From the NCBI RefSeq assembly GCF_000189555.1, contig NC_017276.1: a DNA stretch of 64,000 nt. One strand, written 5' to 3'. Both the position numbers and the translations under genes were made by a program. The notes under the pieces are model-generated. The model had not been told where the DNA came from. It searched no databases and saw only the letters and a program-made list of their open reading frames with translations. Below, one piece after another: positions 14,601 through 59,275 of this stretch. This DNA is from Saccharolobus islandicus REY15A. GTDB taxonomy: Archaea; Thermoproteota; Thermoprotei_A; Sulfolobales; Sulfolobaceae. Position 1 is the first letter of the stretch, and the number at the start of each line of letters is the position of its first letter.

Positions 14601-14643
14601 ATCTTAGAATTATTCTAGTGTTGGTATTTAAATTTTTTCGTAA

Positions 14644-15120
14644 CTATTTTCTAAGTTCTGGAGGATAAAATAATTTCATTCTATCATAAAATACTGCTCT
14701 TAGGTCATTAAGTAATGGTTCGAACTCTTCAATTCTATTATTCTTAGCAAGCTCAACTAATTGTGAAGCAATATCAATCATTTTCATATCATGATTAACT
14801 ATTTGATCCAACTCCTCAGTTGTAACTTTCCACCTGGCGTAAATATCCGCACCTCCACCCTGACTTGACATTATATTGTTTATTAGCTCCCTGATTTTAG
14901 AGATCAAAAACTCCATTACCTTAAGTTGGGGTGAAAATGGATCAGTTGAGGCAATAAAGCTTTCCTTTTCTGAGATTATCCTTATCGTTTGTTCTAATCT
15001 ATCAATAACTGCTCTTCTAACTAGGAAATCGTCTTGTCTAATTAGATCTTTTGCTTTATACCCCCTATAACCTGGTAAAAGTAATTGTAACTGCTCAATG
15101 GGGGTTAACTCTCTTGGCAT
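14644..15120 (-). CDS. Conserved helical hypothetical protein upstream of SPFH gene
   Basis: PGYRGYKAKDLIRQDDFLVR motif; co-oriented with 13734-14600. Confidence 0.7.
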   Translation of the reverse strand: MPRELTPIEQLQLLLPGYRGYKAKDLIRQDDFLVRRAVIDRLEQTIRIISEKESFIASTDPFSPQLKVMEFLISKIRELINNIMSSQGGGADIYARWKVTTEELDQIVNHDMKMIDIASQLVELAKNNRIEEFEPLLNDLRAVFYDRMKLFYPPELRK

Positions 15121-36650: not shown

Positions 36651-37968
36651 CTTAACAAGGGGTTCAAAGGGGGCGAAAGACCCCTTCCGTGAGGGAGGAG
36701 ATGGATAGCCCCCTTATTTAAATAATTCTTTTTCAAATATTCTATTAATGTCTGACGTAGGGTTACGCTTTAGAGCTTACGCTGACGAACAAACATTGAG
36801 GGCGTTAAAAGCCCAATTGAGGTTAGCGTGTGAAGTGTACAACACCCTACGTTGGGCAGACATCTATTTTCATGAGAGAGACGGAAAAGGACTCACTAAG
36901 ACGGAGTTGAGACAACTAGCTCTCGATCTAAGAAAACAGGATAAACAATATCAACATCTATATTCCCAAACACTACAACAGATCGCAGACAGATTCTACG
37001 ACGCTAGACAGAGGTTCTTCGAAGGGTTAGCACACTTCCCCAAGGAAAAGAAAGCACACAAGTGGTACTCACTAGTATACCCTCAGTCAGGTTGGAAAGT
37101 CATGAAGGTGAGAGAAATAAGGACGAAAAGCAAGAAGAACAAGAAGAAGGTAATGACGCTTCAGCTTTCAAACCTAGGTATCTTCAACGTCGTTGTTCAT
37201 AGGGATTTCCAACTGGAAAAAGTGGAGAGGGTAGTAGTCAAGCTGGCACCTTCAGGCAGATTGTACATCACTTTCGTTGTGGATCAAGAGTATCCTCAAC
37301 TCCCCAAGACAAACAAAGTTGTTGCTGTGGACGTTGGTGTAGAGAAACTTCTCACTACCTCTGACGGGGAATACGTGCCAAACATGAGGCCTTACGAGAA
37401 GGCACTCAACAAGATGAAGAGGCTTCATAAAGCTCTTTCAAGGAAGAAGTTCTTGTCACACAACTGGTTTAAGGCAAAGGTTAAGCTTGCAAGGGCTTAT
37501 GAGCACTTGAAGAACCTGAGGATGGATATGTACATGAAACTGGGGAAGTATTTTGCTGAGCATTATGATGTTCTCGTAATGGAGGATATTCATGTTAAGC
37601 AAATTGTTGGTAAGTCTCTCAGAAGGCTGAGGATGAGGTTGCACGATGTTGCTTTTCATGAGTTTAGGAGTATTATGGAGTATCAAGTTGGGAAGTATGG
37701 TAAGGAGATTCGTTTTGTTAATCCTGCTTTTACTTCAATGATTTGTGCTAGGTGTGGTTACGTTAAGAAGGACTTGGCTTTGGCTGACCGTGTGTTTGTC
37801 TGTCCTTCCTGCGGTTGGACTGTAGACCGTGATTATAATGCTTCTCTTAATATTCTGAGTAGATCGGGGTTGGAACGACCCTTAGTGCCTGTGGAGCTGA
37901 GACCTCTACCTTTGGCAAGCCTCGGCTGTGAAGCAGGAAGCCACGTCCGTTAGGGCGTGGTAGTTCAC
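36651..37968 (+). mobile_element. tnpB-only IS200/IS605 element (IS1341/ISC1316-like, 1318 bp)
   Basis: Left end CTTAACAAGGGG after TTTAT, right end GTGGTAGTTCAC; boundaries confirmed by reconstituting the interrupted gene with no TSD. Confidence 0.9.
36748..37953 (+). CDS. tnpB: TnpB RNA-guided endonuclease (appears intact)
   Basis: AVDVG, MEDI, DRDYNAS RuvC motifs; CARC/CPSC Zn finger. Confidence 0.95.
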
Positions 37969-38134
37969 GAGAGTAAACCAAAACCTTGACTCCTTCATCC
38001 AAAGCCTTATTAACATCTATCCCTTCCTTTAGTGCAAGAGATAAGCCAGAGGTCGTAATTATTAAGGAATATTTTCTTTTAAACTTTTCAACAATCTTGT
38101 CCAATCTTTTAAAAAAGATTTGGAGATATAACCG

Positions 38135-39680
<1,546 letters not shown>

Positions 39681-41694: not shown

Positions 41695-42165
41695 ATGGAG
41701 GAGCTAATAAAGAAGGCCGAAGATATAGGAATTAACGTTGAAGACGTACTGATAAGCTTGATAAGCAAGAATGATCCTAAAGAGGAGATAAAGCTTAGGC
41801 TTGATCTTGCTAAGAAGTATATGAAAGAATGCGAGGAGTACTTAAAGAAGAACGACCCAGTTCAAGCTTCTGAAAAGGCTTATAAAGTTGCGGAAGAGCT
41901 AATTAAGGCTTTGTCTGAGAAGTTTAACCTTGAAGAATATCAAAAAACCTTGAAGGAAGGCAGATGGTATGCTTACCTCCTCGTGTCGGCTTCTAGTAAG
42001 CTCTCTCAGAAATTGGGAGACTGGGTATTGTCAGGCTGGGACGCTGGGTACTCACTTCACGTATGGGGTTTTCATGAGGCGAAGCTTGCAATAAATGACA
42101 TTTTACCGAGAGTAGAAAAGGTAAGAAAAATGCTTGAAGAAAGTGAAAAAATACTTGCCAATTAG
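41695..42165 (+). CDS. PaREP1 (HEPN-like) family protein
   Basis: DPVQASEKAYKVAEELIKAL, LHVWGFHE motifs. Confidence 0.88.
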   Translation: MEELIKKAEDIGINVEDVLISLISKNDPKEEIKLRLDLAKKYMKECEEYLKKNDPVQASEKAYKVAEELIKALSEKFNLEEYQKTLKEGRWYAYLLVSASSKLSQKLGDWVLSGWDAGYSLHVWGFHEAKLAINDILPRVEKVRKMLEESEKILAN

Positions 42166-42370
42166 TCATTGCTTATCTAAAGTCATGGATATCTAAATGA
42201 TATTTGATTAAGTAATCTAATTAAAAGGCAAGAATTATTAATATTATATAAACCATACTAGTACAGATAACTTTATTAATTTCATACAAATTTTTGTAAC
42301 TAAAGAGATAAAAGAGTTATTATTTTCAAATAAAATAGTTATTGACGGTTATCTTGCCCTACATATGTTA

Positions 42371-42784
42371 TTATATGTTTACACGCTTTGCGTAATCCTT
42401 TAGCCTATCCCAATCCTTATCGTTAGATAGAACATTAACTCCTTGCCTTTTAGCAATTACAGCAAGAACTGCATCAACAGCGTCTACGTCTTTATCTTTC
42501 ATCACTTCAAATGCCTCAACAAAATCCTTTATGTTCGGATATTCTAATTGAACATTTTGCTGATATAACATCTTCAAAAATTCTCGACCGAACGCTAAAT
42601 ATTTATTGGCGACTTCCCGTTTATTTTTCTTCATAGCTTCAAGTGCATTTTTCCTTATTACCTCCATCACTTCTACAAGGACAAGATCCGAATATACTGG
42701 ATCATAGCTCCCAAGTAAGTTAAATAGTTTATTTCTCTTTTCTATAATTATATTGGTATCAACTAGTACTTTCAATTTCACCAC
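42371..42784 (-). CDS. PIN-domain (VapC-like) protein
   Basis: VLVDTNII, LVEV, DAVDAVL, LSNDKD motifs. Confidence 0.88.
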   Translation of the reverse strand: MVKLKVLVDTNIIIEKRNKLFNLLGSYDPVYSDLVLVEVMEVIRKNALEAMKKNKREVANKYLAFGREFLKMLYQQNVQLEYPNIKDFVEAFEVMKDKDVDAVDAVLAVIAKRQGVNVLSNDKDWDRLKDYAKRVNI

Positions 42785-44009: not shown

Positions 44010-45237
44010 GAGAATGTCCGGAATGTAATTATCTGAATGAATATATAAATGGAATGATAAATATTAATATTATCAGAAGTATAAAACCTGGTTAATCTGG
44101 AAAAACTTGATCATGGAAAAATATCAAGTTAAGAAGATTTATTTGTCATGCATGGTGATGCTTGAGTGCGTGATGACGTTTCTTAGAGTTGAACTATTCG
44201 ACGTCCTGGAGGGGTTCTCCGTTGGACGGCTAGGAACATCCTGATATTGTAGAAGACTCCCAGGACGTGGAGGAAGGCTTCGTTCCTCCACACCGTGGTC
44301 CCATAGGGCCTCCAGAACTTGTACAGGAAGGTACCGAAGAACTCCACGTGGGCCCTCAGAGTCGTGAAAGGTTTCTCCATAGCTATGAGCTGGGTTGGGG
44401 AGGGCGAGAAACCCCTATCAGCTATCTTAATCCCCTTGAGCGGGGACTTAAATCTCTCATCCGAGAAGTTGGCAGGCTTCACCGTGATGGACCTTACGAA
44501 GAGGGAAGTGGAGATAACTATTAGGGCCTTCAGCCCGAAGTGAGAGACTCCCCTCTTCTTGGTCCACTTCCCCTTGAATCTCCTCTTAGTTCTCCCCAAG
44601 GAGAGCAGCTTCTTGGCCTTCTTCAAGTTACCTTCCTTCTTCTCCAGCTCTGCCTTCTCTCGGAAGGTCTCCACGCTCCTCTTCCCAAAAGGTAAGTCTA
44701 GAAGGAAGGAGTCAACGAGCCACGCAATGAAGTCCAGGAAGTGGGCACTGGCAGGGAGGTAACTGGGTAGGCACTTCTCCTCAAGCTTGAAGGAAATTTC
44801 CAGCAACTTCTTCCTTACTTCGTATACTCTTCCCACGAAATCGTGTAATGTGCTCTTGCCCACTTTCCTCCCAACGAACTACGCCACAACGACGTTCACG
44901 TTGACCATCTTTACCGCGTCTCTATAGGAACAGGAGTAGAGTACCATGACGATTAGTAACTTCAGGTAAATCAGAGTGCCTTCTCCTAGAACTCTTTCTA
45001 AATCTAGGGTGTCTAGCACGGGTTTGATATCCGTTAACCATTTTTCCCTCCACGGCATATCCTCTCTTGGGGGGAGAGAATAGTACACTAAGTTTGGGAT
45101 GCGTCTTAGTGTACGTGCCATGGTACTACTCTCTCCTCCCATAACTTAAGTATTACTACAATTTAATCCAAGATAATGCTAAGAATCAATTTATTCTCAA
45201 AAATTAAAATTCAGTTTTTTACATTCCGGACACTCTC
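44010..45237 (-). mobile_element. 1228-bp IS (IS5-like, ISC1234/ISC1212 type), copy 1; transposase has a nonsense codon
   Basis: 19-bp TIR GAGA(A/G)TGTCCGGAATGTAA; TGG>TAG at 44879-44881 relative to copy 2; flanks ACCT / TCGA. Confidence 0.85.
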
Positions 45238-46380
45238 TCGAGCATAGTCCACACTACTTACGCAAGTGATGAAACCTGCTTTACTCACTAGCGTCAAAGG
45301 GCTTATTATAATACAGCACAGCCCAAGTAATAACAGCCTAGCACAAGCAGTAATCAACTTCTTACCCCTAAGCCTACCCTTATGATCCTCATAAAAACGC
45401 TTAATAATAGGATTAACCTTGATAGCAGTCAAAGCTGCAAGATAGAAAGCCCTCCTCAAAACAGCATCACCCCTCTTAGAAATACCTCTCAATACAACAC
45501 TCTTACCACTAGACTCAACAACCGGGTCAAGACCACAATAAGCAACAAACCTCTTCTTATCACTAAAGCGCCTAATATCACCAACCCTAGCCAAAATAAT
45601 ACAACCCAAGGTTTTACCAATACCCGGAATAGTGAAAATCAAACTATCCTTGGGAACAAAATTCTCAAGCTCCTTCTCAATCTCCCTCTTCCTAGCTTCA
45701 AGCCTCTCCAACTCCTCCAAAAGAAACCTCAGACAACACTATACCATCTCCACTCCTCAAAACCTCCTCCAAATTCTTCCTGGACAGACTATCCCTATAG
45801 CCTAAAAGTACCAAATCCCTCCTCAGCCTATTCTTAACCCTAGCAATACTCCTAGTAACGAAATCCCACTGGCTAGTCAACTCCCTAGCATCACTTGTTG
45901 TAAACCCACTACCCATACTTACAACTATTTCTGCTAGCTTTTTAGCATCATTCTTATCACTCTTCTTACCCCTAAAATCCTTAAACTTCTTGAGAATAAA
46001 GGGATTAATAATCCTAACTCACCCATTAAGTACTTTGCTAGGTTAACGTGGTAAACTCCAGTACTTTCAATACCCACTTTGCAACCCTTAGGCAAAATCT
46101 TCCTTATCTCCTCAAACCCTTGCCTATCATTAGGAAACTCGTAGTATTTACCTTGAAAATACATGATTAATTTATCTTTTGATACATCTATTCCTGCAAC
46201 TGGGGCCTCCATGTATACTCACCCTTATGTTTTATTCGGGCTTCAAGCCCAACTTCCGGTTTGAATTGGAGGCTGCCAAGCTAACAACCGAGCTTTAAGC
46301 CCAAAGAGGTCAACGGCCTACACCCCAGTCAGATCTGTATTACACAGATCTGACTAATATGTTTTATATAAGGAAGTCAG
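45238..46380 (-). mobile_element. IS110-family element (ISC1190-like), frameshifted, downstream end cut by the 1228-bp IS
   Basis: GIDVSK and IESTG DEDD-RuvC motifs, IPGIG, SG.S..RGISKRGD, KRFY in three frames; ~170-bp non-coding end upstream of the ORF. Confidence 0.88.
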
Positions 46381-46436
46381 TTACGGAGACTGTTATTCAT
46401 GTTGTCGAGTAACTTATGATACTATTTCCTAAGTTA

Positions 46437-47141
46437 CTATTCCATCTTCTTTCCTACTACTAATACTCCTATTACTGCCTCACCCTCCTTCAGGTTAAGT
46501 GCCGTATTAAGAATATAGTCATTAAAACCGCCAACGGCACATATACCCAGGCTGAGTGCTGTAGCTACTAGATATAAGTTCTCCATGACTATTCCCGCAT
46601 CAATCAACGCAAACCTCGCACCTCTGTTACCATACTTTACCAAGACTTTCCAATACCTCGTCGTTAAGATGATAAGCAACGGAATTGTATTAATATCTGG
46701 AATAGAACTAACAATATTTGACTTAAGAATTTCTAACTGAATCTCGTTATTAAGCTTCTCTAGAGAGTGATACAACGGATTATAGTGATATACACCTATT
46801 TCCAAGTCGGATATAAAAGGAATTAAATACACCTCGGTCTCTGCTAAACCTCCTGCTGAAGGAAACATTCTATATATAATCTCACTGTCTTTCTTCCTAA
46901 CTCCGACAGAGTAATAAAGTAAGTCAGAAATCGTATGAATGTCTACCTTTTCTTCCTTAAACTTTCTCGTTGAAGACCTAGAAGTGATTACTCTCTGAAA
47001 GTTTTCTCTTATCTCCCTAGGTTTAGGTAGGGATATAACCTTAACCCCTTCATAAACTTTCGGATAATTATCTGGAATTAACGTAAAAGTAAAATTCTGT
47101 GTCTTTAGGTAAAATTCCTCAAATACATCCATCACGACCAC
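46437..47141 (-). CDS. SagB/McbC-type azoline dehydrogenase (FMN nitroreductase fold)
   Basis: SRSSTRKF, PSAGG, YHYNP, Lys-Tyr motif KYGNRG, DAG..MENLYL..GG. Confidence 0.9.
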   Translation of the reverse strand: MVVMDVFEEFYLKTQNFTFTLIPDNYPKVYEGVKVISLPKPREIRENFQRVITSRSSTRKFKEEKVDIHTISDLLYYSVGVRKKDSEIIYRMFPSAGGLAETEVYLIPFISDLEIGVYHYNPLYHSLEKLNNEIQLEILKSNIVSSIPDINTIPLLIILTTRYWKVLVKYGNRGARFALIDAGIVMENLYLVATALSLGICAVGGFNDYILNTALNLKEGEAVIGVLVVGKKME

Positions 47142-48440
47142 CTAAGGGAATGGTACCGGTTCTTCGGTAAATAGTTCAACCTCACTAAGTCCTATCTTCT
47201 TCCTTATAGTATAATATCTCTGGTGACCTAAGAAAGGCATGTCTGGAGTATGGGCTGGGGTTAGGTCAGGAACCATCACCCTAACCAGTTTTCCCCTACC
47301 TATATACTTCTCCACGTTAAAGTCCTTGTAAATTATCTTATATTGGCTTAGTACCTCTCCAATAAGTTCCTTGTAACTTAACGACTCTTCCCTTTCTAGC
47401 TCCTCGTAATTAATGCTTTTAAGGCTGCTTAGATAATTCAACAGAAAGTCTTTCCTAACATACGTGTAGTAAAGCGGGACTAACCAGAAATCAATTAAAA
47501 GATCTGGGGTGAGCTTCTTTGCAAGTTTAACCTCCTCTTCACTTATTTTACTGAAGGACGAAATTGACTGATAAACTTCGTAAATTGCTCTCCTTAACGC
47601 ATTTTCAACAGTTATATCTGCAGACGCACCTCCGACATAAAATCCGTTGATAAAACCTAAACAACCTATGACGAAAAGGCCCTTAAACTCGTTAATAAAG
47701 CGTAAGCAAATAACATCTTCGTTTTCAAGTACTTTATACTTCCTTTTTAGTCTCTCTGGGATCCGTATTCTCAAAGGGCTTATACGTGAAATCCATGAAA
47801 TATTTATTGCATCCCTCTCCAAGTATTCTAACAATCCATGAATAAACGCTTTTTCGAAATCTTCATGATATGATAATCCTCCGGTGGTAGAGTATGCTAT
47901 TAGATCTTCACCGGGCTTTATCAAATCTGTTAAGTAAATTATCTGCGAGGGTACGTAAACTGTTTTATTGTCTTTATAGGATGTAGCTCTGGTAAACGTT
48001 ATAACTGCCTCATCTGAATAGTCCTTGAAAAAGAATAACTTCTTGAGTTGTTCTCTTGAAAAGAACTTGTAACTCGTAGGGAGGATATCAAACTTCTCTT
48101 TTATTTCTGCAACTTTTCCGAAAATAGATGTGTTATCGTCAAAAAAAGTCATATAACCGTAAAATCTTTCTAAGAACTCTCCAATAGCACCCTTAAGACT
48201 CTCTTCCTCTTTTTCCCCCTTACCTCCTGCAGGCACGATATCTTTTAAGTACCTTAAAAGCGGTGTAAATTCAACAGGGAAATTTTTAGTATATCTAGCC
48301 TTAATATATTGAGTAGCTAATTCAGATTCTAACAGCTCATAGTTTACATAGTTTAAAAGTTTTGTAATTATAATATTATCATATTTTTCTATGGTATAAC
48401 CGAAAGCGGGTCCTAAAAATTCATTAATTAAATCTTGCAT
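47142..48440 (-). CDS. ycaO: YcaO cyclodehydratase (D protein)
   Basis: STTGGLS...GLLEYLERDA ATP-binding motifs, GASA, RAIYE; C-terminal PVPFP (PxPxP) typical of azoline-forming YcaOs. Confidence 0.92.
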   Translation of the reverse strand: MQDLINEFLGPAFGYTIEKYDNIIITKLLNYVNYELLESELATQYIKARYTKNFPVEFTPLLRYLKDIVPAGGKGEKEEESLKGAIGEFLERFYGYMTFFDDNTSIFGKVAEIKEKFDILPTSYKFFSREQLKKLFFFKDYSDEAVITFTRATSYKDNKTVYVPSQIIYLTDLIKPGEDLIAYSTTGGLSYHEDFEKAFIHGLLEYLERDAINISWISRISPLRIRIPERLKRKYKVLENEDVICLRFINEFKGLFVIGCLGFINGFYVGGASADITVENALRRAIYEVYQSISSFSKISEEEVKLAKKLTPDLLIDFWLVPLYYTYVRKDFLLNYLSSLKSINYEELEREESLSYKELIGEVLSQYKIIYKDFNVEKYIGRGKLVRVMVPDLTPAHTPDMPFLGHQRYYTIRKKIGLSEVELFTEEPVPFP

Positions 48441-49098
48441 TTAGGGCACCCTGGAATCTTTAATGGTGTATTTATTATTAATTCCCCCTCCATTACGTCT
48501 ACATATACTAATTTACCGCCAAATTTGTCGCTGTTAAAAAGCATCTTAGAAAATCCCAATAATAACAACTCTGAGAAATCACTTAGGGCAGGTGTAGCTT
48601 CTTTTATCATAACGCCATCAACTTTTACATCCAGAATTAACCTAGAATTCTTTAGCCATAAGTATATCTCATACATACAAGGGATGGCTTTCTTATTGAC
48701 AACGTATATGAAAAACCTATAGGGATCCATTATGTACGCTATAAGGACTTTTTTAAACCTTGTTAAGTCAATTGGCTGACTGACGAGAAAGTGAATACTA
48801 CTCGAGACAATTAATACCTTTTCGTTCTCTGGCACCTCTTCAATTGAATTAAAGACATTAACGAACTGCGGATAATGAAATCTTATTCTATTAATTACTG
48901 CATTTATTTTCTCCTCCTTTTCCGGTACTAACATTCTAATTTCTTTCAACTCCTCCGTGTTTAATGACATTAAGTTGTTAAATTCATCTTCACTAAACTC
49001 TATTAAACCTGAAGCTTCCGAATATGCAAGATACTTATTATAATTTTTAAATATTAAAAAAAAAAGGTGATATGGTTAGGGTAGGATGCATAGTACAT
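48428..49098 (-). CDS. E1/ThiF-like cyclodehydratase partner (C protein); true start probably ATG 49098, interrupted by an A10 homopolymer frameshift
   Basis: C-terminal KIPGCPKC; overlaps the ycaO start; ATG 49098 has a GAGGT SD and joins the 48970 frame if the T10 run is read as T11. Confidence 0.7.
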
Positions 49099-49102
49099 GA
49101 CC

Positions 49103-49210
49103 TCATTTTTTCCCCAACCAACAACCTATCCAACAGCCAATCCAACTAAAAACTACTTTATTATCTCTGCTTATTTCTATCGCCTTTCTATAGGTGTAAT
49201 CTATCTGCAC
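49103..49210 (-). CDS. Candidate RiPP precursor 1: (M)QIDYTYRKAIEISRDNKVVFSWIGCWIGCWLGKK (alternative ATG 49258 gives 51 aa)
   Basis: Hand-translated; directly upstream of and co-oriented with the C-YcaO-B genes; GCW repeats. Confidence 0.7.
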   Translation of the reverse strand: MQIDYTYRKAIEISRDNKVVFSWIGCWIGCWLGKK

Positions 49211-49310
49211 GTTCTTTCCCCATTCTTTTTCCCCACTTTCTAAAATAAAAATAAACATTATAGTTAAAACTTTTTAACAGTATACACTATTAATATTATT
49301 ATTAGAGTAT

Positions 49311-49973
49311 TTGAGTAGATTGATGAAGAGTCTTTTAACTTACTTTCTCAAACAATTAATATTTAGCGAACCGGCTGTTTACAATATTTTGTTAGGCTTT
49401 ATTATAGCCTTAATTATTTCAAGTACTACAAAATTTGATATTAGCTTAAATGTCTCTGAAAATCTAATACTTAGTATACTTTCAGTTGGGGTGAGTTTTA
49501 TATTTCTTTACAACTTTTCTTCTCTTCTATTCTTTATTAAGTTCGGAAGATTAAGATTGGGATTATACTTAATATTACTTTACCTTTCTGGGGAAATAGC
49601 AGCGCTATTTTACACGTTGTTGTTTATTATCTTATACCGCTTCCTTTTTAGTAATCCTGCGACTTTTAGTATTCCATATTTTCTCATTATGACCCTTTTA
49701 TTGTTTCTATTTTTAGTATCCATTTCCACGTTTTTATCGTTTATACTGACTAATGGAAGGCTGGACTGCCCTATAATTATGACAATTTACCCTATAATAG
49801 TTGTACCAACATTTATATTCTCCTTTTACAAGAGTGAGATAAATCCTCTTTGGATATTTGGGATGGTGAGTGAAAATATTTCAATTCCTCTTACCTTAGG
49901 CATTATTTTCTTGGTATCTCCAATCATTTTCATATATTTGCTAATATTTTTGATAAAAAAGTTTCTAAGCTAG
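49311..49973 (+). CDS. ABC-2-like permease / membrane protein
   Basis: Six hydrophobic segments; inside the RiPP locus. Confidence 0.7.
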   Translation: MSRLMKSLLTYFLKQLIFSEPAVYNILLGFIIALIISSTTKFDISLNVSENLILSILSVGVSFIFLYNFSSLLFFIKFGRLRLGLYLILLYLSGEIAALFYTLLFIILYRFLFSNPATFSIPYFLIMTLLLFLFLVSISTFLSFILTNGRLDCPIIMTIYPIIVVPTFIFSFYKSEINPLWIFGMVSENISIPLTLGIIFLVSPIIFIYLLIFLIKKFLS

Positions 49974-49974
49974 C

Positions 49975-50076
49975 TCATATTTTCTTGCAGCAACACCAGC
50001 AACCAAACCAGCAACCAAGCATTATCGGATTAATTTCGGTTAGATCTTTTGATTTTCTATTGGTACTTACTATCAC
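49975..50076 (-). CDS. Candidate RiPP precursor 2: MIVSTNRKSKDLTEINPIMLGCWFGCWCCCKKI
   Basis: Hand-translated; GGTGA SD 9 nt upstream of GTG; GCWxGCW core plus CCC. Confidence 0.75.
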   Translation of the reverse strand: MIVSTNRKSKDLTEINPIMLGCWFGCWCCCKKI

Positions 50077-50187
50077 CAATTTTTATCACCTTTACTACGT
50101 TAGTAAATTATAATTAAAAAGAATTTGCTTGGTTAATGAGTTTTAACTCTATTCATCGTTTTTATTACTTTTTACGGGATTTAAATT

Positions 50188-50925
50188 ATGGAATTAGAGA
50201 AATCTATGATAAAGAGGTTTTCGTTCTCACCAGCTGCAATATCTTATTTACTCGGAATGATGTTACTGGACTCATTAGGACTTTATTTTGCATTAAATAG
50301 TATTAGAAACATAGATGCAGGAATAATATGGTACAGTGTTGCGATATTACTGTTGGTAGCTAGCTTATCAACAGGTTTTAGCATTACATTAATCTACCAG
50401 TCCTCTGCATTAGCTTACTATGTAAGATTTAGTAGACTTAAAATGTCTAACTACATCCTGAGTTTATTCATAGGTTCACTGATCTCTGCGACTATATACT
50501 CGGTAACTTTCGCAGCTCTCATTACACCATTAATAACTAAACTAACACTTGACCATTTTTACGAAATTATCAGGCTTGATAATATTTTACCCTTCATAGC
50601 CTCAGCTCTAATCTCAAGTCTCTTCATTCTATCCTTAACCTTTACAATCATTGCAACATTACTGGTTAAGGTTGGGGCTAAAGCGTCAAACTATGCTTAC
50701 TACATCTTCTTTGTGTTGTTAGCAATTTCAGACCTCTCGCCTTCAGCCTCATCGTCACTTAACCCCTTCTACGAAGCTGAAAATATAATTTCGTACTCCC
50801 TCATCCACGATAGCATAAGTATTTACTCCATTGAAGTAGCATTACTGGCGATAGTCTTATTGTTATTAGGGAATTGGATTTTGAAGAAGATCAAGGCACT
50901 AAGACTGGAAGAGGTTGTGTGGTAA
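50188..50925 (+). CDS. ABC-2-like permease
   Basis: Six TM segments; stop overlaps the ATPase start. Confidence 0.75.
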   Translation: MELEKSMIKRFSFSPAAISYLLGMMLLDSLGLYFALNSIRNIDAGIIWYSVAILLLVASLSTGFSITLIYQSSALAYYVRFSRLKMSNYILSLFIGSLISATIYSVTFAALITPLITKLTLDHFYEIIRLDNILPFIASALISSLFILSLTFTIIATLLVKVGAKASNYAYYIFFVLLAISDLSPSASSSLNPFYEAENIISYSLIHDSISIYSIEVALLAIVLLLLGNWILKKIKALRLEEVVW

Positions 50926-51557
50926 TGTTGGAGATTAAAGATTTATCTATCAATTTCGAGGACTTTACGATCTTAAAAAACATTAACTTAAAACTTGAAA
51001 ATCAAGTGTGTGTAATACTGGGTCCTAATGGTTCCGGAAAAACTACCTTGCTAAGAGCTATATCTGGAATAATTCCATACAAGGGTTCGATAAAGATAAA
51101 CGGTAAGGAGGTTAGGAGTGCTAAGAGGATTTTAGAATACTCCACAAATCTTCAAGAGGTATACACTATAGGTAACTCCGCATGGGATACTGCGAAAATA
51201 ATAGCGGAGATTAAGGGCGGAGATTTAAAAGAATTCACAAACATCTTAAGCTATCTGGACGTAGACAGAAAGGTGATACACAAGCCTATTTATAAGATGT
51301 CTACTGGACAGAGGAGTTTAGTATCGTTAGCATTGGCACTTTTTATGAAGCCTCAAATAGTTACTATCGACGAGCCGATAGAGAATGTGGACGTCAATAG
51401 GAGGGATAGGGTGATATCGTTATTACGTGAAAGAGTGAATGAGGGTTTAATTGTAACACACCAGAAGGAGTTAATCAAGATGTTAGAGAATAATAAAAAG
51501 GAAGTGATAATTTATACGATAGTTAACGGTGAGCTTGTTGAAGGTGATAAAATGTAA
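50925..51557 (+). CDS. ABC transporter ATP-binding protein (start ATG 50925)
   Basis: GPNGSGKT, MSTGQ signature, IDEP, TH. Confidence 0.9.
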   Translation: MLEIKDLSINFEDFTILKNINLKLENQVCVILGPNGSGKTTLLRAISGIIPYKGSIKINGKEVRSAKRILEYSTNLQEVYTIGNSAWDTAKIIAEIKGGDLKEFTNILSYLDVDRKVIHKPIYKMSTGQRSLVSLALALFMKPQIVTIDEPIENVDVNRRDRVISLLRERVNEGLIVTHQKELIKMLENNKKEVIIYTIVNGELVEGDKM

Positions 51558-51651
51558 TAGGAAAGCGAGGGGAAGAAAAGATGTATATATTGCATGCTGG
51601 GTTGGTTGCTGGTTCAGTTGTTGGACTTCGAGTGAGGTTAAAAAATCTTAA
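51544..51651 (+). CDS. Candidate RiPP precursor 3: MIKCNRKARGRKDVYIACWVGCWFSCWTSSEVKKS
   Basis: Hand-translated; shares NRK leader motif, xCW repeats and C-terminal KK with the other two; overlaps the ORF-track ORF 51581 in another frame. Confidence 0.6.
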   Translation: MIKCNRKARGRKDVYIACWVGCWFSCWTSSEVKKS

Positions 51652-52306
51652 CTATAATCTAAGTTTAAATCCATTGTCAGGAAAATTAGTAAAGGGTGAA
51701 AGAATTATTAGTAAAGAAATAGATGTTCAGAAATCCGTAGAAATAAGCGAGAAGCTTTATCATCGTGTTATGCTTAATGCATCAAAGACAATATTAGATT
51801 TCATAGGGCTTGGAAGTCTTACTACTTTTTTATTAACAAGCCTTATCTCAAACCCTCTTACTTTTAACATTAGCATAATAGTCTTTTCCACCATATACGT
51901 GTTTATCTCTTGGAGGATGAGTAGGTTTGTATATCCATTTATTAAGACATTTAACTCTCACAAATCTTCGTTAATTGTCAAAAAATTTCCCTTACTTGTT
52001 AAGCTAACCTACACACTTTCGCTCATAATACTTTACGTCCTATTTCTACTCTCATTTCGAATTCACTTCCTATCTAATTTACCAATTTTTCTTGTAGGTG
52101 CATACATATCTTTCATTGGGAGTCAGTTAATTACTACCATAAGATTTCTGAAAGAGAACTCTATAGAGTACGTTCTAGTTACATCTTATATTCTTTCAGG
52201 AGTAGCTATCATAATATCTCCTTTCCATATAATAACCCTCTTAATCCCGCCACTATCAGCCTTTTTGTACAAATTGATAAGGGGGCTGAGGAATGGAGCT
52301 AGATAA
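51581..52306 (+). CDS. Polytopic membrane protein (possible immunity factor); real start may be downstream, e.g. ATG 51770
   Basis: About six TM segments in the C-terminal 180 aa; 5' part overlaps candidate precursor 3. Confidence 0.6.
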   Translation: MYILHAGLVAGSVVGLRVRLKNLNYNLSLNPLSGKLVKGERIISKEIDVQKSVEISEKLYHRVMLNASKTILDFIGLGSLTTFLLTSLISNPLTFNISIIVFSTIYVFISWRMSRFVYPFIKTFNSHKSSLIVKKFPLLVKLTYTLSLIILYVLFLLSFRIHFLSNLPIFLVGAYISFIGSQLITTIRFLKENSIEYVLVTSYILSGVAIIISPFHIITLLIPPLSAFLYKLIRGLRNGAR

Positions 52307-52589
52307 ATTAATAAAACTGTTGAAGGATAATAAGGAGTTAAATGTTGGAGTTAGGTTAGGGATTCTACTAGGTCTTTATTATACTAGGTCTGCATGGTTT
52401 AAGGAATTGTTAGAAGCCACCAGGTTAAATAAGGCTGAACTGTATCAGCATCTTAAGATCTTGCATAAGAGTGGATACGTAGAGATTAAATATATCCCTA
52501 CAGTTGAAGGTAAGAGGTTGAAGGTTTTTATAACTAAAAAGGGCGATGAATTAATAAAGCAAGTCGTTGAACTATTAAGGGAGAAGTAA
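52293..52589 (+). CDS. Winged-HTH transcriptional regulator (ArsR/MarR-like)
   Basis: FKELLEAT.LNKAELYQHLKIL..GYV...ITKKG pattern. Confidence 0.85.
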   Translation: MELDKLIKLLKDNKELNVGVRLGILLGLYYTRSAWFKELLEATRLNKAELYQHLKILHKSGYVEIKYIPTVEGKRLKVFITKKGDELIKQVVELLREK

Positions 52590-52730
52590 TTTTATCGTTT
52601 TAAGGAGTTTTAACCTTATGGGAGCAAAGGAAGAGGAAAGCCCTGCCTTTTAGGGCTAAAGGAAAGTCAGTGTAGATCTAAACGGTAACTTTTCTAAAAA
52701 TTTTAATAATTAATTATCTTATTTCAATCC

Positions 52731-53308
52731 ATAATTAAGATAGAAGAAATTACAAAGTACTTTGGAAAAAGAAAAGTTCTTGATAATGTCACTTTCACAG
52801 TTAATGATGGGAAATCGTTGGATTTGTTGGACTGAATGGTGCAGGGAAAACCACGACTATCAGGATCATTGTTGGAACAATAGAACCCAACTCAGGCGAT
52901 GTATTTATAGACGGTTATAGTATAACAAAAGGAACGCTTCAAAAGAAGTAGGCTGGGTACCAGAACTACCGATATTCGAATTAGATGCTAGAGCGCTTGA
53001 CTATTTCATCTACATAGCAGGATATTACGGTATAGGGAATAAAGAAGCTAAGGAAATGGGAATGAAGCTATTTGAAGAAGTGGGACTGTTGGGTAGGGAG
53101 AATGACAATCTCAAAAGTTATTCCCAGGGTATGAAAAAAAGGTTTGCCCTCGCTGTTTCCCTCATATCTAATCCAAAAAATTTTGTGTTCGACGAAGTAC
53201 TTAACGGCTTGGATCCACAAGGGATACAGTTCTTTAGAAATTTAGCACTTAAGATGAAAAAGAAGGGAAGGCTGTACTCTTCTCCTCTCATATCCTCTCT
53301 GAAGTCGA
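52731..53308 (+). pseudogene. ABC ATPase pseudogene (frameshifts; cut by IS)
   Basis: GLNGAGKTT, YSQGMKKR and FDE in different frames; SH-loop region abuts IS copy 2. Confidence 0.8.
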
Positions 53309-54536
53309 GAGAATGTCCGGAATGTAATTATCTGAATGAATATATAAATGGAATGATAAATATTAATATTATCAGAAGTATAAAACCTGGTTAATCTGGA
53401 AAAACTTGATCATGGAAAAATATCAAGTTAAGAAGATTTATTTGTCATGCATGGTGATGCTTGAGTGCGTGATGACGTTTCTTAGAGTTGAACTATTCGA
53501 CGTCCTGGAGGGGTTCTCCGTTGGACGGCTAGGAACATCCTGATATTGTAGAAGACTCCCAGGACGTGGAGGAAGGCTTCGTTCCTCCACACCGTGGTCC
53601 CATAGGGCCTCCAGAACTTGTACAGGAAGGTACCGAAGAACTCCACGTGGGCCCTCAGAGTCGTGAAAGGTTTCTCCATAGCTATGAGCTGGGTTGGGGA
53701 GGGCGAGAAACCCCTGTCAGCTATCTTAATCCCCTTGAGCGGGGACTTAAATCTCTCATCCGAGAAGTTGGCAGGCTTCACCGTGATGGACCTTACGAAG
53801 AGGGAAGTGGAGATAACTATTAGGGCCTTCAGCCCGAAGTGAGAGACTCCCCTCTTCTTGGTCCACTTCCCCTTGAATCTCCTCTTAGTTCTCCCCAAGG
53901 AGAGCAGCTTCTTGGCCTTCTTCAAGTTACCTTCCTTCTTCTCCAGCTCTGCCTTCTCTCGGAAGGTCTCCACGCTCCTCTTCCCAAAAGGTAAGTCTAG
54001 AAGGAAGGAGTCAACGAGCCACGCAATGAAGTCCAGGAAGTGGGCACTGGCAGGGAGGTAACTGGGTAGGCACTTCTCCTCAAGCTTGAAGGAAATTTCC
54101 AGCAACTTCTTCCTTACTTCGTATACTCTTCCCACGAAATCGTGTAATGTGCTCTTGCCCACTTTCCTCCCAACGAACCACGCCACAACGACGTTCACGT
54201 TGACCATCTTTACCGCGTCTCTATAGGAACAGGAGTAGAGTACCATGACGATTAGTAACTTCAGGTAAATCAGAGTGCCTTCTCCTAGAACTCTTTCTAA
54301 ATCTAGGGTGTCTAGCACGGGTTTGATATCCGTTAACCATTTTTCCCTCCACGGCATATCCTCTCTTGGGGGGAGAGAATAGTACACTAAGTTTGGGATG
54401 CGTCTTAGTGTACGTGCCATGGTACTACTCTCTCCTCCCATAACTTAAGTATTACTACAATTTAATCCAAGATAATGCTAAGAATCAATTTATTCTCAAA
54501 AATTAAAATTCAGTTTTTTACATTCCGGACACTCTC
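53309..54536 (-). mobile_element. 1228-bp IS (IS5-like), copy 2; intact 319-aa transposase (53482-54441)
   Basis: Same 19-bp TIRs; flanked by 4-bp TSD TCGA; near-identical to 44010-45237. Confidence 0.9.
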
Positions 54537-54731
54537 TCGATTGTGATTGAGATAAAATGGGAATGAAAGTGTAGGGACAAACAGTTTAACAAATTATGAC
54601 CGTTATTGCTGAGGCTCCTCGCCCAAGATTTCGTTTACATTCTCCCTTAACAACTTAAATGTTATGTTAAACAATTCTGGATTGCCGATAAAAGGGATAG
54701 TTATATTAAATTCGCAAGTGATTATAATTAG

Positions 54732-55771
54732 TATGATTAATGGGCTTGAGATTCAGAACTTTAGAGGAATAAAGTATTGTAAACTTGAGGATCTCTCACA
54801 AGTTAACATACTCGTAGGGAGGAATAACTCGGGTAAATCGACAATCCTTGAGGCTATTTACTTTATTTCTTCTCTCGGCGAAAATTATGATGAGATTAGA
54901 AAAATACAGAAGATAGATTATTTAATACGTAGGCGGTTGGAGGAGAGAATTAAGGAAAAAATAGAGAAAAGTATTACAAGTATTACCAAGATGAATAATA
55001 ATATAGTTAATTTGACTTCACTAATACCAAATATTAGACATTGATGTTTTTTCTCAATTTTTTTATAATTTTGATAAAAATGAAAAAATAATTTTCAATA
55101 TAAATATTGATAATTTTACTTATTTTGTTGAGGTCACTCATAAGAACTATAATCAAATAGAGTTAAAAACTAACGTTAGCGACTCTATTTCAGAAATATT
55201 TAAAAACGTTGTTTTCATAGACCGCAATCTATCCTTATCCCAACTGTACGATATAATAGGAGATTTGAAAAGGGAGAAAAGAAAGGACAAGGAAATTGTC
55301 AAACTATTAAAAGAGGAGTTCGAAGTAGACGTTGAAGGGATAGAATTTTCGCGTTATTTAGGCGGTTTTGTACTATCATTAACCCTTAAGGACACTTCGA
55401 TCCCAATTGACCTTTTGGGTGATGGGGCTAAATTGGCAGTACTTATATCTTCAATACTATTATACTTAGAAGGGAAGGGGATCGCTTTAATAGAAGAGCC
55501 TGAGCTCCATGAACACCCTGGGGGCATATATACCCTTCTAAATTTCGCTTTTAAAATAGCTAAAGAGAAAGGTATCCAGTTATTTATAACTACACATAGC
55601 TCTGATGTAATAAAATACTCGTTTAAAATAGCTAAAGAGAAAGGTTTAAAGACTCAGCTAGTGTATTTGAGGAAAGTTAACGGAAGAGTTAACTCTGTTA
55701 ATTTAACAGAAAATAATATGAATCTTCTAGAGGAAATAGGAATGGACGTAAGAGTGCTGGATGTACTGTAG
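54732..55771 (+). pseudogene. AAA_21/ABC-type ATPase split by one frameshift near 55022-55044
   Basis: IQNFRGI and GRNNSGKS in frame 1; second frame open from ~55025 through LGDG, LIEEPE, TTHS. Confidence 0.75.
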
Positions 55772-56255
55772 GCGAATAGTTTTGGAGAAGTGCCTAATTT
55801 TTTACAGGATCAAGAACGTTAACCCGACGATAAAATCGAAGTTTGACGAAATAGTACTATGTGAAGGGAAAACTGAAGTGGAAGTAATAAAATCCTTATA
55901 CGATAGACTGGAAAAGTTTATTTGTGAACGTGCAGAGAAGCGTAAGAGAATCGGAGTAATTAATATGAAAGGTATCGGAAACTTAAACAAGTTTATTGGA
56001 TTCTTTACTAACCTATATGACCGCGGAATCGTTGAGAATAACACGTTGTACATTATAATGGACAAGGATTTATTTGACATGTTTAGTTTTAGAAGTCAGT
56101 GTAATGGTGAGGGAAAGCTGTTAGAGTGTCGTTCAGGACCTTTGCGATTAATTATTGCTCTAAATTATAACAAGATTGAAGACGAAATACAAGTCTTTAC
56201 TGATGATAGGATTACTCATGGAGATTTAACTCGATTAAAGTCTCAGACTATTTAG
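55761..56255 (+). CDS. TOPRIM-like (OLD/DUF4435/DUF3226-type) partner protein
   Basis: VLCEGKTE, KGIGN, IMDKD motifs; overlaps the ATPase stop. Confidence 0.65.
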   Translation: MYCRRIVLEKCLIFYRIKNVNPTIKSKFDEIVLCEGKTEVEVIKSLYDRLEKFICERAEKRKRIGVINMKGIGNLNKFIGFFTNLYDRGIVENNTLYIIMDKDLFDMFSFRSQCNGEGKLLECRSGPLRLIIALNYNKIEDEIQVFTDDRITHGDLTRLKSQTI

Positions 56256-57886: not shown

Positions 57887-59275
57887 ATGGAAATAGCAGT
57901 ATACTGTGGCAAAGTATATAGTTGGACGGACGAAATCTGTAAGTACAATTCGGGATATCCTATTCTTGATTATAACTCAGTAGTTGGGTGGGTTAGCTCT
58001 CGTGGGGAAGGATCTTTCCTTATTTTCGGTACTGATGTTATACCTTACACATTGTACGATTACCCGAACAAGCCGATAGACATGACGGAAATTTTCAAAT
58101 TTATGGAAAGAGGAGGTACGGTAATTTGGGTAGGAGACACTCCCTTCTATTACGTAGATAAAAACAACGGTGTAAAAAAGGCGATATTCAGCAAAGGAAA
58201 TCCTTTCCCCTTTTTGCCTATAAACCTTGGGCACAAGCCCGTGTCTGAGAATAGTGAAAACACTATAGTGGGAGAAATGCTAGAATACAACCCTAAGGAT
58301 TCTTGGAGACCGGTGGAAGCTAACCCGTCACTGATACCAATAAGTATAATAAAACAAGGTGGAGGAATACTTTACTCAACGTGGATTTATAAGTACGGAA
58401 AAGGTAGATTTGTAAGGGTTTACGATTCCCCTTACGTTAACGTTAACTACGTGTTATCATTACCGGAAAAACTTAGCAAGTTGGGAATCGGTATAAGGAT
58501 AAGGAATTATAGGAAGCTAAATGACTTTAAGATGATTTTACCTAGTTTTAAAATCGGCGTAATTTTGGGTAAGAATAACGTTGGTAAAACTAGTATATTG
58601 GAGGCAATAGCAATGCTAGATAAAAATAACGTAAGCAAAATAAGGGAATTCAGAGGTAGGATATCTAGTCAAGTTGCGGAAACTGAATTATTTTTAAATG
58701 AATATTATAGGGTTGAGTTTTCAGATAATACCTCATCACGAATTAAAGACGCTAAAGTACTTTTAATATATTCTCACAATGCCAACCCAACTACTACTTT
58801 TGACGTATCGATTTTACGTAAAGTTACTGATCTATTAAGCAAGTTTGACCCAAATATTTTCTACGTTTACCTATCTGCGGGTAATGAGGTTAGAGTATTA
58901 TTTAATGATAAGACTGACGTTTCAATTAATGAGTTAGGTTACGGATACAAGAGCTTACTAAATTTCATATTGTCTTATGCTGTTTATCAGCCTAAGATTA
59001 TTCTCATTGACGACTTAGAAGGATTTGCCCTACACCCGGAATTGCTTAAGCAGTTTTACGACTTTTTATTGAGACTAGATGTAGACTTAATATTAATTAC
59101 AACGCAGAGCAGTGACGTTTATGCGTACTTAGCTGAAAAGCGCTCTGATAACGTTAGGTTTATACTAATTAATGACGGTAATTACGAGGTTCTGTCTTCG
59201 GAAGAAGTTTTGAATAGGATGAATTATGAAGATTTAAGATATACTGCACTTAAATTATCTGGTGAAGTTCACTGA
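57887..59275 (+). CDS. Fusion: ~200-aa N-terminal domain (GATase1/ThuA-like fold, inferred) + AAA_21 ABC-type ATPase
   Basis: FMERGGTVIWVGD and YGKGRFV in the N-part; IRNYRKL, GKNNVGKT, LGYG, LIDDLE in the C-part (H-switch position reads TTQ). Confidence 0.75.
   Translation: MEIAVYCGKVYSWTDEICKYNSGYPILDYNSVVGWVSSRGEGSFLIFGTDVIPYTLYDYPNKPIDMTEIFKFMERGGTVIWVGDTPFYYVDKNNGVKKAIFSKGNPFPFLPINLGHKPVSENSENTIVGEMLEYNPKDSWRPVEANPSLIPISIIKQGGGILYSTWIYKYGKGRFVRVYDSPYVNVNYVLSLPEKLSKLGIGIRIRNYRKLNDFKMILPSFKIGVILGKNNVGKTSILEAIAMLDKNNVSKIREFRGRISSQVAETELFLNEYYRVEFSDNTSSRIKDAKVLLIYSHNANPTTTFDVSILRKVTDLLSKFDPNIFYVYLSAGNEVRVLFNDKTDVSINELGYGYKSLLNFILSYAVYQPKIILIDDLEGFALHPELLKQFYDFLLRLDVDLILITTQSSDVYAYLAEKRSDNVRFILINDGNYEVLSSEEVLNRMNYEDLRYTALKLSGEVH

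Follow-up and report, generated by a model that had tools for sequence, protein, structure and literature searches.

A 64,000-nt stretch of Saccharolobus islandicus REY15A DNA (NC_017276.1; hereafter the window) contains, between positions 46437 and 52589, a locus that we read as a cluster of the thermoacidophisin family, that is, a cluster for linear azol(in)e-containing peptides (LAPs), also called thiazole/oxazole-modified microcins (TOMMs). We put at about 0.72 the probability that it belongs to this family, makes Trp-thiazole peptides and includes an ATP-binding cassette (ABC) transporter and regulator. A preliminary description had proposed a C/D/B azole cluster of the ribosomally made, post-translationally modified peptide (RiPP) kind with these accessory genes, and every open reading frame (ORF) it relied upon exists at the position assigned to it. 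The locus consists of two divergent gene sets. On the minus strand, within 46437-49210, lie in order a precursor gene (A1) and the genes for a small E1-like partner protein (C), a YcaO protein (D) and a SagB-like flavoprotein (B). C runs 13 nt into D, which in turn abuts B, an arrangement that fits a single operon. The plus strand encodes a 220-amino acid (aa) membrane protein, a putative 245-aa permease, an ABC ATPase, a further membrane protein and a 98-aa winged-helix protein. Stop/start overlaps join the permease, the ATPase, a precursor gene termed A3, the further membrane protein and the winged-helix gene in one chain.

The two larger enzymes pass the cut-offs of their families. D (47142-48440, minus strand; 432 aa) is a SagD-type YcaO cyclodehydratase: it matches the whole of the Pfam YcaO model PF02624 with 134.7 bits and TIGR03604 (SagD-type TOMM cyclodehydratase) with 222.8 bits, for a cut-off of 219.25. 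Its GEFLER and LEYLERD motifs are unchanged across 11 homologues, as is the PVPFP end (...EEPVPFP) that had been singled out as a PxPxP tail, with P430 and P432 invariant. MusD and McbD are among the PDB relatives found by sequence. The preliminary description had named a YcaO of the thioamide/TfuA kind as one finding that would undo its reading. D is not of this kind, since it scores as SagD-type and no ORF of the locus matches TfuA in Pfam or NCBIfam; against TIGR03266, the McrA-thioamidation model, it reaches 46.6 bits, far under the cut-off of 365, and C and B partners are present. B (46437-47141, minus strand; 234 aa) is a SagB-family azoline dehydrogenase dependent on flavin mononucleotide (FMN). 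It scores 153.7 bits against TIGR03605 (SagB; cut-off 78.4) and also matches Pfam Nitroreductase (PF00881). Among proteins of solved structure it comes closest in sequence to the azoline oxidases BmdC, CyaGox and McbC, and the KYGNRG segment, by which a SagB-like protein had been recognised at the outset, aligns with the Lys-Tyr site of these relatives (KYG of BmdC). Orthologues of B, 55-93% identical, adjoin YcaO in every related locus.

No family model in Pfam or NCBIfam matches C, so its E1-like nature had to come from structure. A natural, intact orthologue (from locus L018; related loci are given here by their L numbers) was modelled with AlphaFold2 from a 14-sequence alignment, and the model was used in a Foldseek search of the PDB. 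With a predicted local distance difference test score (pLDDT) of 70.7 and a predicted template modelling score (pTM) of 0.69, it gave McbB and the E1-like/RiPP recognition element (RRE) part of LynD and TruD, two cyanobactin heterocyclases, as best matches, followed by MccB, MusD, MoeB and ThiF (E 1.6e-7 downward, probability 1.0). Intact C orthologues of 215-223 aa occur in Stygiolobus caldivivus, Acidianus infernus, A. brierleyi, Sulfurisphaera ohwakuensis and metagenomes. The Sulfolobales proteins align to the C-terminal half of the ~330-aa C proteins of distant clusters, in which YcaO is 32-39% identical; the two sets have in common an invariant Cys, E, W, N and the ...IPGCxxC end, and the long homologues give sub-threshold matches to TIGR03882 and TIGR03603. 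The family is tiny (7 clusters among 1.84 billion representative proteins in a profile search). Judged from the model, C appears to be a very divergent, shortened E1-like partner, and it is predicted to bind the leader.

Three precursor genes accompany these enzymes. A1 (49103-49210, minus strand) encodes 35 aa when read from GTG 49210, the longest ORF extending to 49258; the 35-aa form is MQIDYTYRKAIEISRDNKVVFSWIGCWIGCWLGKK, with the core ...VVFSWIGCWIGCWLGKK, and the exact 35-aa and 51-aa forms are both found in public protein collections. A2 (49975-50079, minus strand; 34 aa from a TTG start) lies beside the 3' end of the 220-aa gene, preceded by a conserved TATA-like TTTTTAATTATAA; its core is ...MLGCWFGCWCCCKKI, and the G-C-W repeat is seen in ...NPIMLGCWFGCWCCCKKI. 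A3 (51529-51651, plus strand; 35-40 aa, with a start within 51529-51544) overlaps the last codons of the ATPase gene and has the core ...IACWVGCWFSCWTSSEVKKS, with the repeat seen in ...VYIACWVGCWFSCWTSSEVKKS. In a six-frame translation of the entire window the motif CW.[GSAC]CW occurs three times, always inside the locus, against 0.005 expected (200 shuffles). Cys-Trp precursors next to the enzymes, announced by the preliminary description as a Trp/thiazole-rich peptide, are thus borne out. All three peptides are under purifying selection: the pooled pairwise ratio of nonsynonymous to synonymous change (pN/pS) in the peptide frames is 0.36 for A1, 0.38 for A2 and 0.08 for A3.

The positions of the three genes are kept as well. 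A1 stands upstream of C in L014, L016, L018, L020-22, L031 and L032, and A3 directly after the ATPase gene in L014, L016, L018, L031, L032 and L033; in L018, L016, L032, L014 and L033, A2 adjoins the 220-aa gene at its 3' end. The complete three-precursor placement is found in L018 (YcaO 90% identical), in L016 and A. infernus (77-79%) and in S. acidocaldarius (65%); Stygiolobus has A1 and A3 and is devoid of A2. A leader motif, M-x-[IV]-x-x-x-[NY]-[RK]-K-[AS], is common to A1, A2, A3 and the single precursors of the distant clusters. The latter, which include bacterial contigs of 64-66% GC, keep precursors with G-[CS]-W repeats (on these contigs, for example, the core GGFG[SC]WGGA[SC]WVGSFGCW), and the conserved substrate unit appears from these comparisons to be G-(C/S)-W. 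A collection of 15 billion proteins contains no exact match to A2 or A3 as encoded in the window, in S. acidocaldarius or in L018; because of this, both genes appear to have escaped annotation so far.

One could suppose that A1 is the sole true substrate and that C/D/B do not process A2 and A3, which would be small peptides with a role in the membrane or in regulation, or remnants of duplication. A1 alone sits in the enzyme operon and A1 alone was reported by Cox et al. (PMC4603692); Stygiolobus manages without A2, and each distant cluster has a single precursor. Against this, the G-C-W core repeat and the leader motif of A1 and of the distant precursors recur in A2 and A3, which are under purifying selection and maintain their positions across four genera. 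We hold the restriction to A1 to be unlikely.

A fourth, A3-like Cys/Trp peptide ORF (...IEIAYWACCWSRCWSKSEV...) was noticed in S. acidocaldarius CP046615 (L014) at 14638-14781, about 4 kb downstream of the cluster. It adjoins integrase and TraG-like genes, a setting that suggests an integrated element.

The C gene of the window is interrupted. The preliminary description had called an E1-like protein from the 180-aa ORF at 48428-48970, which ends in PGCPKCKI. The fold was well guessed, as the model of the intact orthologue indicates, and the break was missed: this ORF is merely the 3' part of a gene spanning 48428-49091 (minus strand). Its frame stays open 5' of ATG 48970 and there encodes ...FKNYNKYLAYSEASGLIEFSEDEFNNL, a homologue of the N-terminal part of the longer C genes found in relatives. 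The conserved start, ATG 49091 (MHPTLTISPFF...), belongs to another frame, and the switch between the two falls within a T homopolymer (49056-49065, minus strand), inside the 5' end of C and 38 nt downstream of the A1 stop. Each of the six relatives compared in a DNA alignment has a T-run of another length and one continuous C ORF. The L030 locus, from the Logan assembly of SRR27475873, corresponds to window positions 46353-53337 and is the same over 6,993 nt except for one gap at the T-run; its C gene is intact, with 223 codons. Since an otherwise identical assembly has C whole, the break probably reflects either a sequencing or assembly artefact (a homopolymer miscall) or a tract that truly varies in length.

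A T-run follows directly upon the A1 stop, within the first C codons (Pro-Phe-Phe), in every Sulfolobales relative (L014, L016, L018-L021 and L030), and its length is not the same in the relatives, the window and L030. Oligo-T tracts terminate archaeal transcription. Between the precursor gene and the enzyme genes the run might attenuate transcription, or it might be a length-variable switch.

On the opposite strand, the pair of ABC-2 permeases in the preliminary description agrees with fold and paralogy, and is not backed by any family model: neither protein matches one, ABC2_membrane included, even at E<=10. The 245-aa protein (50188-50925, plus strand) is a putative ABC-2 (type V) permease, judged from its AlphaFold2 model (pLDDT 67.7, pTM 0.70), whose PDB matches in a Foldseek search are almost exclusively ABC-2/type-V permeases (NosY, ABCG25, PmtCD, ABCG2/5/8 and CcmB; TM 0.55-0.60). 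The 220-aa protein (49311-49973, plus strand), kept in all Sulfolobales loci, is its paralogue, 19-28% identical over the full length by alignment and with a tblastn cross-match at E 9e-17, and is a putative second permease subunit. The ABC ATPase called at 50874-51557 (plus strand) matches PF00005 (ABC_tran) with 79.9 bits, as anticipated. The permease stop overlaps an ATPase start (TAATG at 50923-50927), and ATG 50925, which gives 210 aa, is the probable true start; orthologues have 207-212 aa. The combination, a single ATPase and two permease paralogues, is that of LanFEG-type lantibiotic immunity transporters.

Beyond A3 the chain continues with a conserved membrane protein and the regulator. 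Of the 241-aa membrane ORF starting at 51581 that had been described, the conserved protein of about 200 aa exists, and the first ~30 codons are spurious, being A3 in another frame. That frame has a pN/pS of 2.2 across A3 and contains stop codons in relatives, so the protein probably starts downstream, at TTG 51674. It would then span 51674-52306 (plus strand; ~200-210 aa, against 175-203 aa in orthologues), with its 3' end overlapping the start of the regulator gene; no family model matches it even at E<=10. Weak tblastn matches had raised the idea that it is a third permease paralogue, which was dropped, as hhalign finds no similarity to either permease. The 98-aa winged-helix regulator (52293-52589, plus strand), correctly recognised from the start, matches PF13601 (HTH_34) with 46.3 bits (cut-off 27) and HTH_5 with 27.3 bits, and in every Sulfolobales locus its conserved gene closes the transporter operon. 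A role as a stand-alone RRE was not our first choice for it, since it passes the DNA-binding model HTH_34.

The composition of this half of the locus bears on what the peptides do. They could be made and modified without being toxins, acting in the producer's own membrane, as signals or as metal ligands, with the ABC system placing or exporting them. Each repeat of the very short, hydrophobic cores contains Trp. The extreme conservation of A3, and its grouping with the transporter and not with the enzymes, would be unusual for a diversifying toxin; and the locus encodes no protease and no dedicated immunity protein of a family recognisable in Pfam or NCBIfam. A patchy, mobile-looking distribution, flanking insertion sequences (ISs) and independent exchange of modules are, however, typical of bacteriocin-like antagonism loci, and one ATPase with two permease paralogues resembles immunity or export systems. 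On balance, a non-toxic role seems to us doubtful, if less so than outright decay of the cluster, which is taken up next.

Related loci were gathered through look-ups of exact proteins and a metagenome scan. A YcaO profile scan of genome contigs returned distant YcaO proteins only and no Sulfolobales, a limit of the scan, since Sulfolobales loci exist. In S. acidocaldarius the gene neighbourhood is the same, with D 65%, B 55% and C 47% identical to the window proteins. S. ohwakuensis presents a mosaic. Window positions 49261-52622, comprising the whole transporter, A2, A3 and the regulator, share 93.3% DNA identity with it, whereas positions 47958-49278, with A1, C and the 5' part of D, share only 69.7%; the break sits in the intergenic region between A1 and the 220-aa gene. 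In this species (CP045484, L033, 3686-10154) a DDE transposase interrupts YcaO, B is missing, no Cys is left in the A1 core and A2 has become shorter, and the half with transporter, A3 and regulator is intact and nearly identical to that of the window, as would fit a module of use by itself, for instance for immunity. Because the two halves differ in identity and only the transporter half is intact, the export or immunity module may be exchanged and retained independently.

The distant relatives L024, L025, L027 and L035 have two extra genes that the Sulfolobales loci do not contain. An amidohydrolase gene lies between precursor and C in L025, L027, L034 and L035, and a second, degenerate SagB-like protein of ~230 aa is encoded between D and B. 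A tblastn search with YcaO of 72,556 plasmids (PLSDB) gave no match, leaving carriage on plasmids without support.

Two IS copies of 1232 bp, both encoding a DUF772-type transposase, flank the locus in the same orientation. The left one (44010-45241, minus strand) is 99.8% identical to the right one (53309-54540, minus strand), two bases differing, yet its transposase is split into two ORFs of 226 and 87 aa, the right copy having an intact 319-aa transposase. A degraded element of the IS110 family (45242 to about 46400), broken into three ORFs of 92, 72 and 169 aa, abuts B. On the other side, the right IS copy truncates, at 53309, a frameshifted remnant of a second ABC ATPase gene (52762-53394).

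These features raise the possibility that the cluster of the window is a decaying remnant that yields no product, its transporter module being kept as an orphan immunity system. The frame change in C, the IS copies on both sides with the degraded element next to B, and the clear decay of the biosynthetic half in S. ohwakuensis beside an intact transporter half all speak for such a course. In the window itself D, B, A1, A2 and A3 are nevertheless full length and intact, and the sole difference from L030 over 6,993 nt is the length of a homopolymer, typical of an artefact or of a variable tract. Moreover, the in-frame ATG 48970 could still give a 180-aa C, short of the N-terminal strands only. 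We regard decay as distinctly improbable, the least probable of the alternatives considered here.

The reading that we prefer, a working thermoacidophisin-type cluster, would operate as follows. A1, A2 and A3 would yield peptides in which a basic leader, some 20 residues long, precedes a short hydrophobic core of G-C-W repeats. The E1-like C protein would bind the leader and pair with the YcaO protein D, which, with ATP, would cyclodehydrate each Cys, and possibly Ser/Thr in A3 too, to thiazoline. The SagB flavoprotein would oxidise the thiazolines to thiazoles, giving Trp-thiazole-rich, C-terminally cationic peptides. The ABC-2 transporter, with one ATPase and two paralogous permeases as in LanFEG, would export these products and/or protect the producer, and the winged-helix protein would regulate the locus. 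Products of this kind could be secreted and serve as membrane-active, antagonistic archaeocins directed at other archaea and distinct from the sulfolobicins.

Several observations weigh against this reading. The margin by which D passes TIGR03604 is narrow. C is out of frame in the window, has no match among the Pfam and NCBIfam models, and is known from a model of modest confidence, with pLDDT 48-60 over the first 60 residues, so that its N-terminal beta-strand segment of roughly 40 residues, together with the helices behind it, is at most a putative RRE. The Foldseek E-values of the permease are weak (~1e-2). No leader protease is encoded in the locus, just as the preliminary description had remarked. 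A2 and A3 are placed with transporter genes and not with enzymes, so another role is possible for them, and the locus is flanked by ISs in a variable region, so that decay is possible. Finally, no product has been observed for any family member in the searchable literature. A bolder version of the same reading goes further: three Trp-thiazole peptides, two of them from overlooked precursors travelling with a transporter/immunity module that passes between genera apart from the enzymes, would be the first archaeal azole RiPP antimicrobials, with the T-run setting or phase-varying their production. This we put forward tentatively, as somewhat unlikely in its entirety.

As a prediction, this kind of cluster is already known, since the thermoacidophisin family of TOMMs, named by Cox, Doroghazi & Mitchell in 2015 (BMC Genomics 16:778; PMC4603692) from S. 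acidocaldarius and S. islandicus REY15A, covers it. The statement, in the preliminary description, that TOMM mining had touched Sulfolobales was thus accurate, and the cluster of the window may be one of those already catalogued. As defined by these authors, the family also has four related bacterial clusters; its members have C and D as separate proteins, with B, ABC transporters, a regulator and hypothetical proteins, and their C is unlike other C proteins (PMC4603692), which agrees with the tiny C family found here. Membership follows from D, C and B being orthologous to the S. acidocaldarius cluster and from A1: the precursor in the supplementary table of PMC4603692, MRAYYTVRRANLIYQAYSEGRVLFSWFGCWFGCWFGGGGRVSG (...RVLFSWFGCWFGCWFGGGGRVSG), is clearly homologous to window A1 (...KVVFSWIGCWIGCWLGKK). 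Cox et al. list one precursor per cluster, whereas three conserved precursor genes are present here, and the frame-split C and the modular exchange of the transporter half are not in their account. What appears to be new is the pair of added precursor genes, the split reading frame of C, the resemblance of this minimal C to McbB in fold, and the modular mosaic. No characterised product, and no follow-up under the name thermoacidophisin, was found in the searchable literature.

Two details of the published entries may be recorded. The text of PMC4603692 calls the precursors Tyr/Gly-rich; the sequences in its own table are, like those described here, rich in Trp, Gly and Cys. The REY15A entry of that table shows the S. 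acidocaldarius peptide, which does not match the A1 found here.

A counterpart in logic is the microcin B17 synthetase McbBCD (PDB 6GOS/6GRI), which likewise combines an E1-like leader-binding protein, a YcaO protein and an FMN dehydrogenase. The C model finds its best structural match in McbB, and McbD and McbC were found by sequence. The differences are substantial: C of the window family has ~220 aa against 295 aa in McbB, at 12-13% identity; a zinc tetrathiolate is not evident in C, which has three Cys only (one plus the C-terminal CxxC); the precursors consist of G-C-W repeats and not of the Gly-Ser/Cys tracts of microcin B17; and the locus has no McbEFG-type immunity set and no known TldD/E requirement. 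The D proteins of thermoacidophisin clusters were placed nearest to LAP clusters of the plantazolicin/helicobactin type (PMC4603692), with which the locus shares discrete C, D and B and a small linear precursor; it differs from them by having no methyltransferase, no CPBP protease, another core chemistry and an archaeal host. Streptolysin S-like clusters are more remote. There is no SagE-type CPBP protease here, no membrane protein of the locus matching CPBP/Abi even at E<=10, and the cores are G-C-W repeats without a contiguous Cys/Ser/Thr tract.

For the transporter, the nearest parallels are LanFEG and the peptide exporter PmtCD. As in these, one ATPase of ~210 aa goes with two paralogous putative permeases of six transmembrane segments and ~220-245 aa, and the 245-aa model matches PmtCD and NosY; the permeases here, in contrast, have no detectable sequence family, and an extra conserved membrane protein of ~200 aa is present. 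The sulfolobicins (SulA/SulB of S. acidocaldarius and S. tokodaii) offer an ecological analogy, the locus being a candidate for a further system of antagonism within the Sulfolobales. They are, per the literature, proteins associated with membrane vesicles and not RiPPs, and the locus encodes nothing of that size class.

The searchable literature offers no chemical characterisation of an azole-containing RiPP from an archaeon, and archaeal antagonism is known from halocins, sulfolobicins and, recently, lanthipeptides only. Because the Sulfolobales in which the family occurs, S. acidocaldarius and S. islandicus REY15A, are genetically tractable, direct tests can be made of what the enzymes do, how the product is built, how the producer protects itself and what ecological role the system has. 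For RiPP engineering, the interest lies in the family's enzymes, which would be thermostable, form azoles and include an unusually small C. What is gained here is a full substrate list with three precursors, a caution that the C gene of the reference is split at a homopolymer, and a hint that the transporter half is separately mobile and possibly protective.

Rfam and tRNA scans of the window found nothing. A promoter and terminator scan gave counts equal to those of shuffles and is uninformative, as it models bacterial-type signals and the host is archaeal. Just 3' of B, at 46327-46355, lies a perfect 12-bp inverted repeat, AGTCAGATCTGT...ACAGATCTGACT, which may be the end of the adjacent IS element; the L030 contig ends there. 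Farther out, the stretches 36748-39373 and 41695-42784 encode TnpB (OrfB_IS605/Cas12f-like TNB), PaREP1, a PIN-domain protein and a Csx1-like protein (Cas_APE2256 plus an SSO1393-like winged helix). On the right, OLD-family-like defence genes are found at 54664-56255 and 57887-59275; they comprise an AAA_15 ATPase split into ORFs of 126 and 168 aa, followed by a TOPRIM ORF, and a second AAA_15/AAA_21 protein of 462 aa. With TnpB, Csx1-like, PaREP1, PIN and OLD-like ATPase genes around it, the locus lies in a typical variable or defence region.

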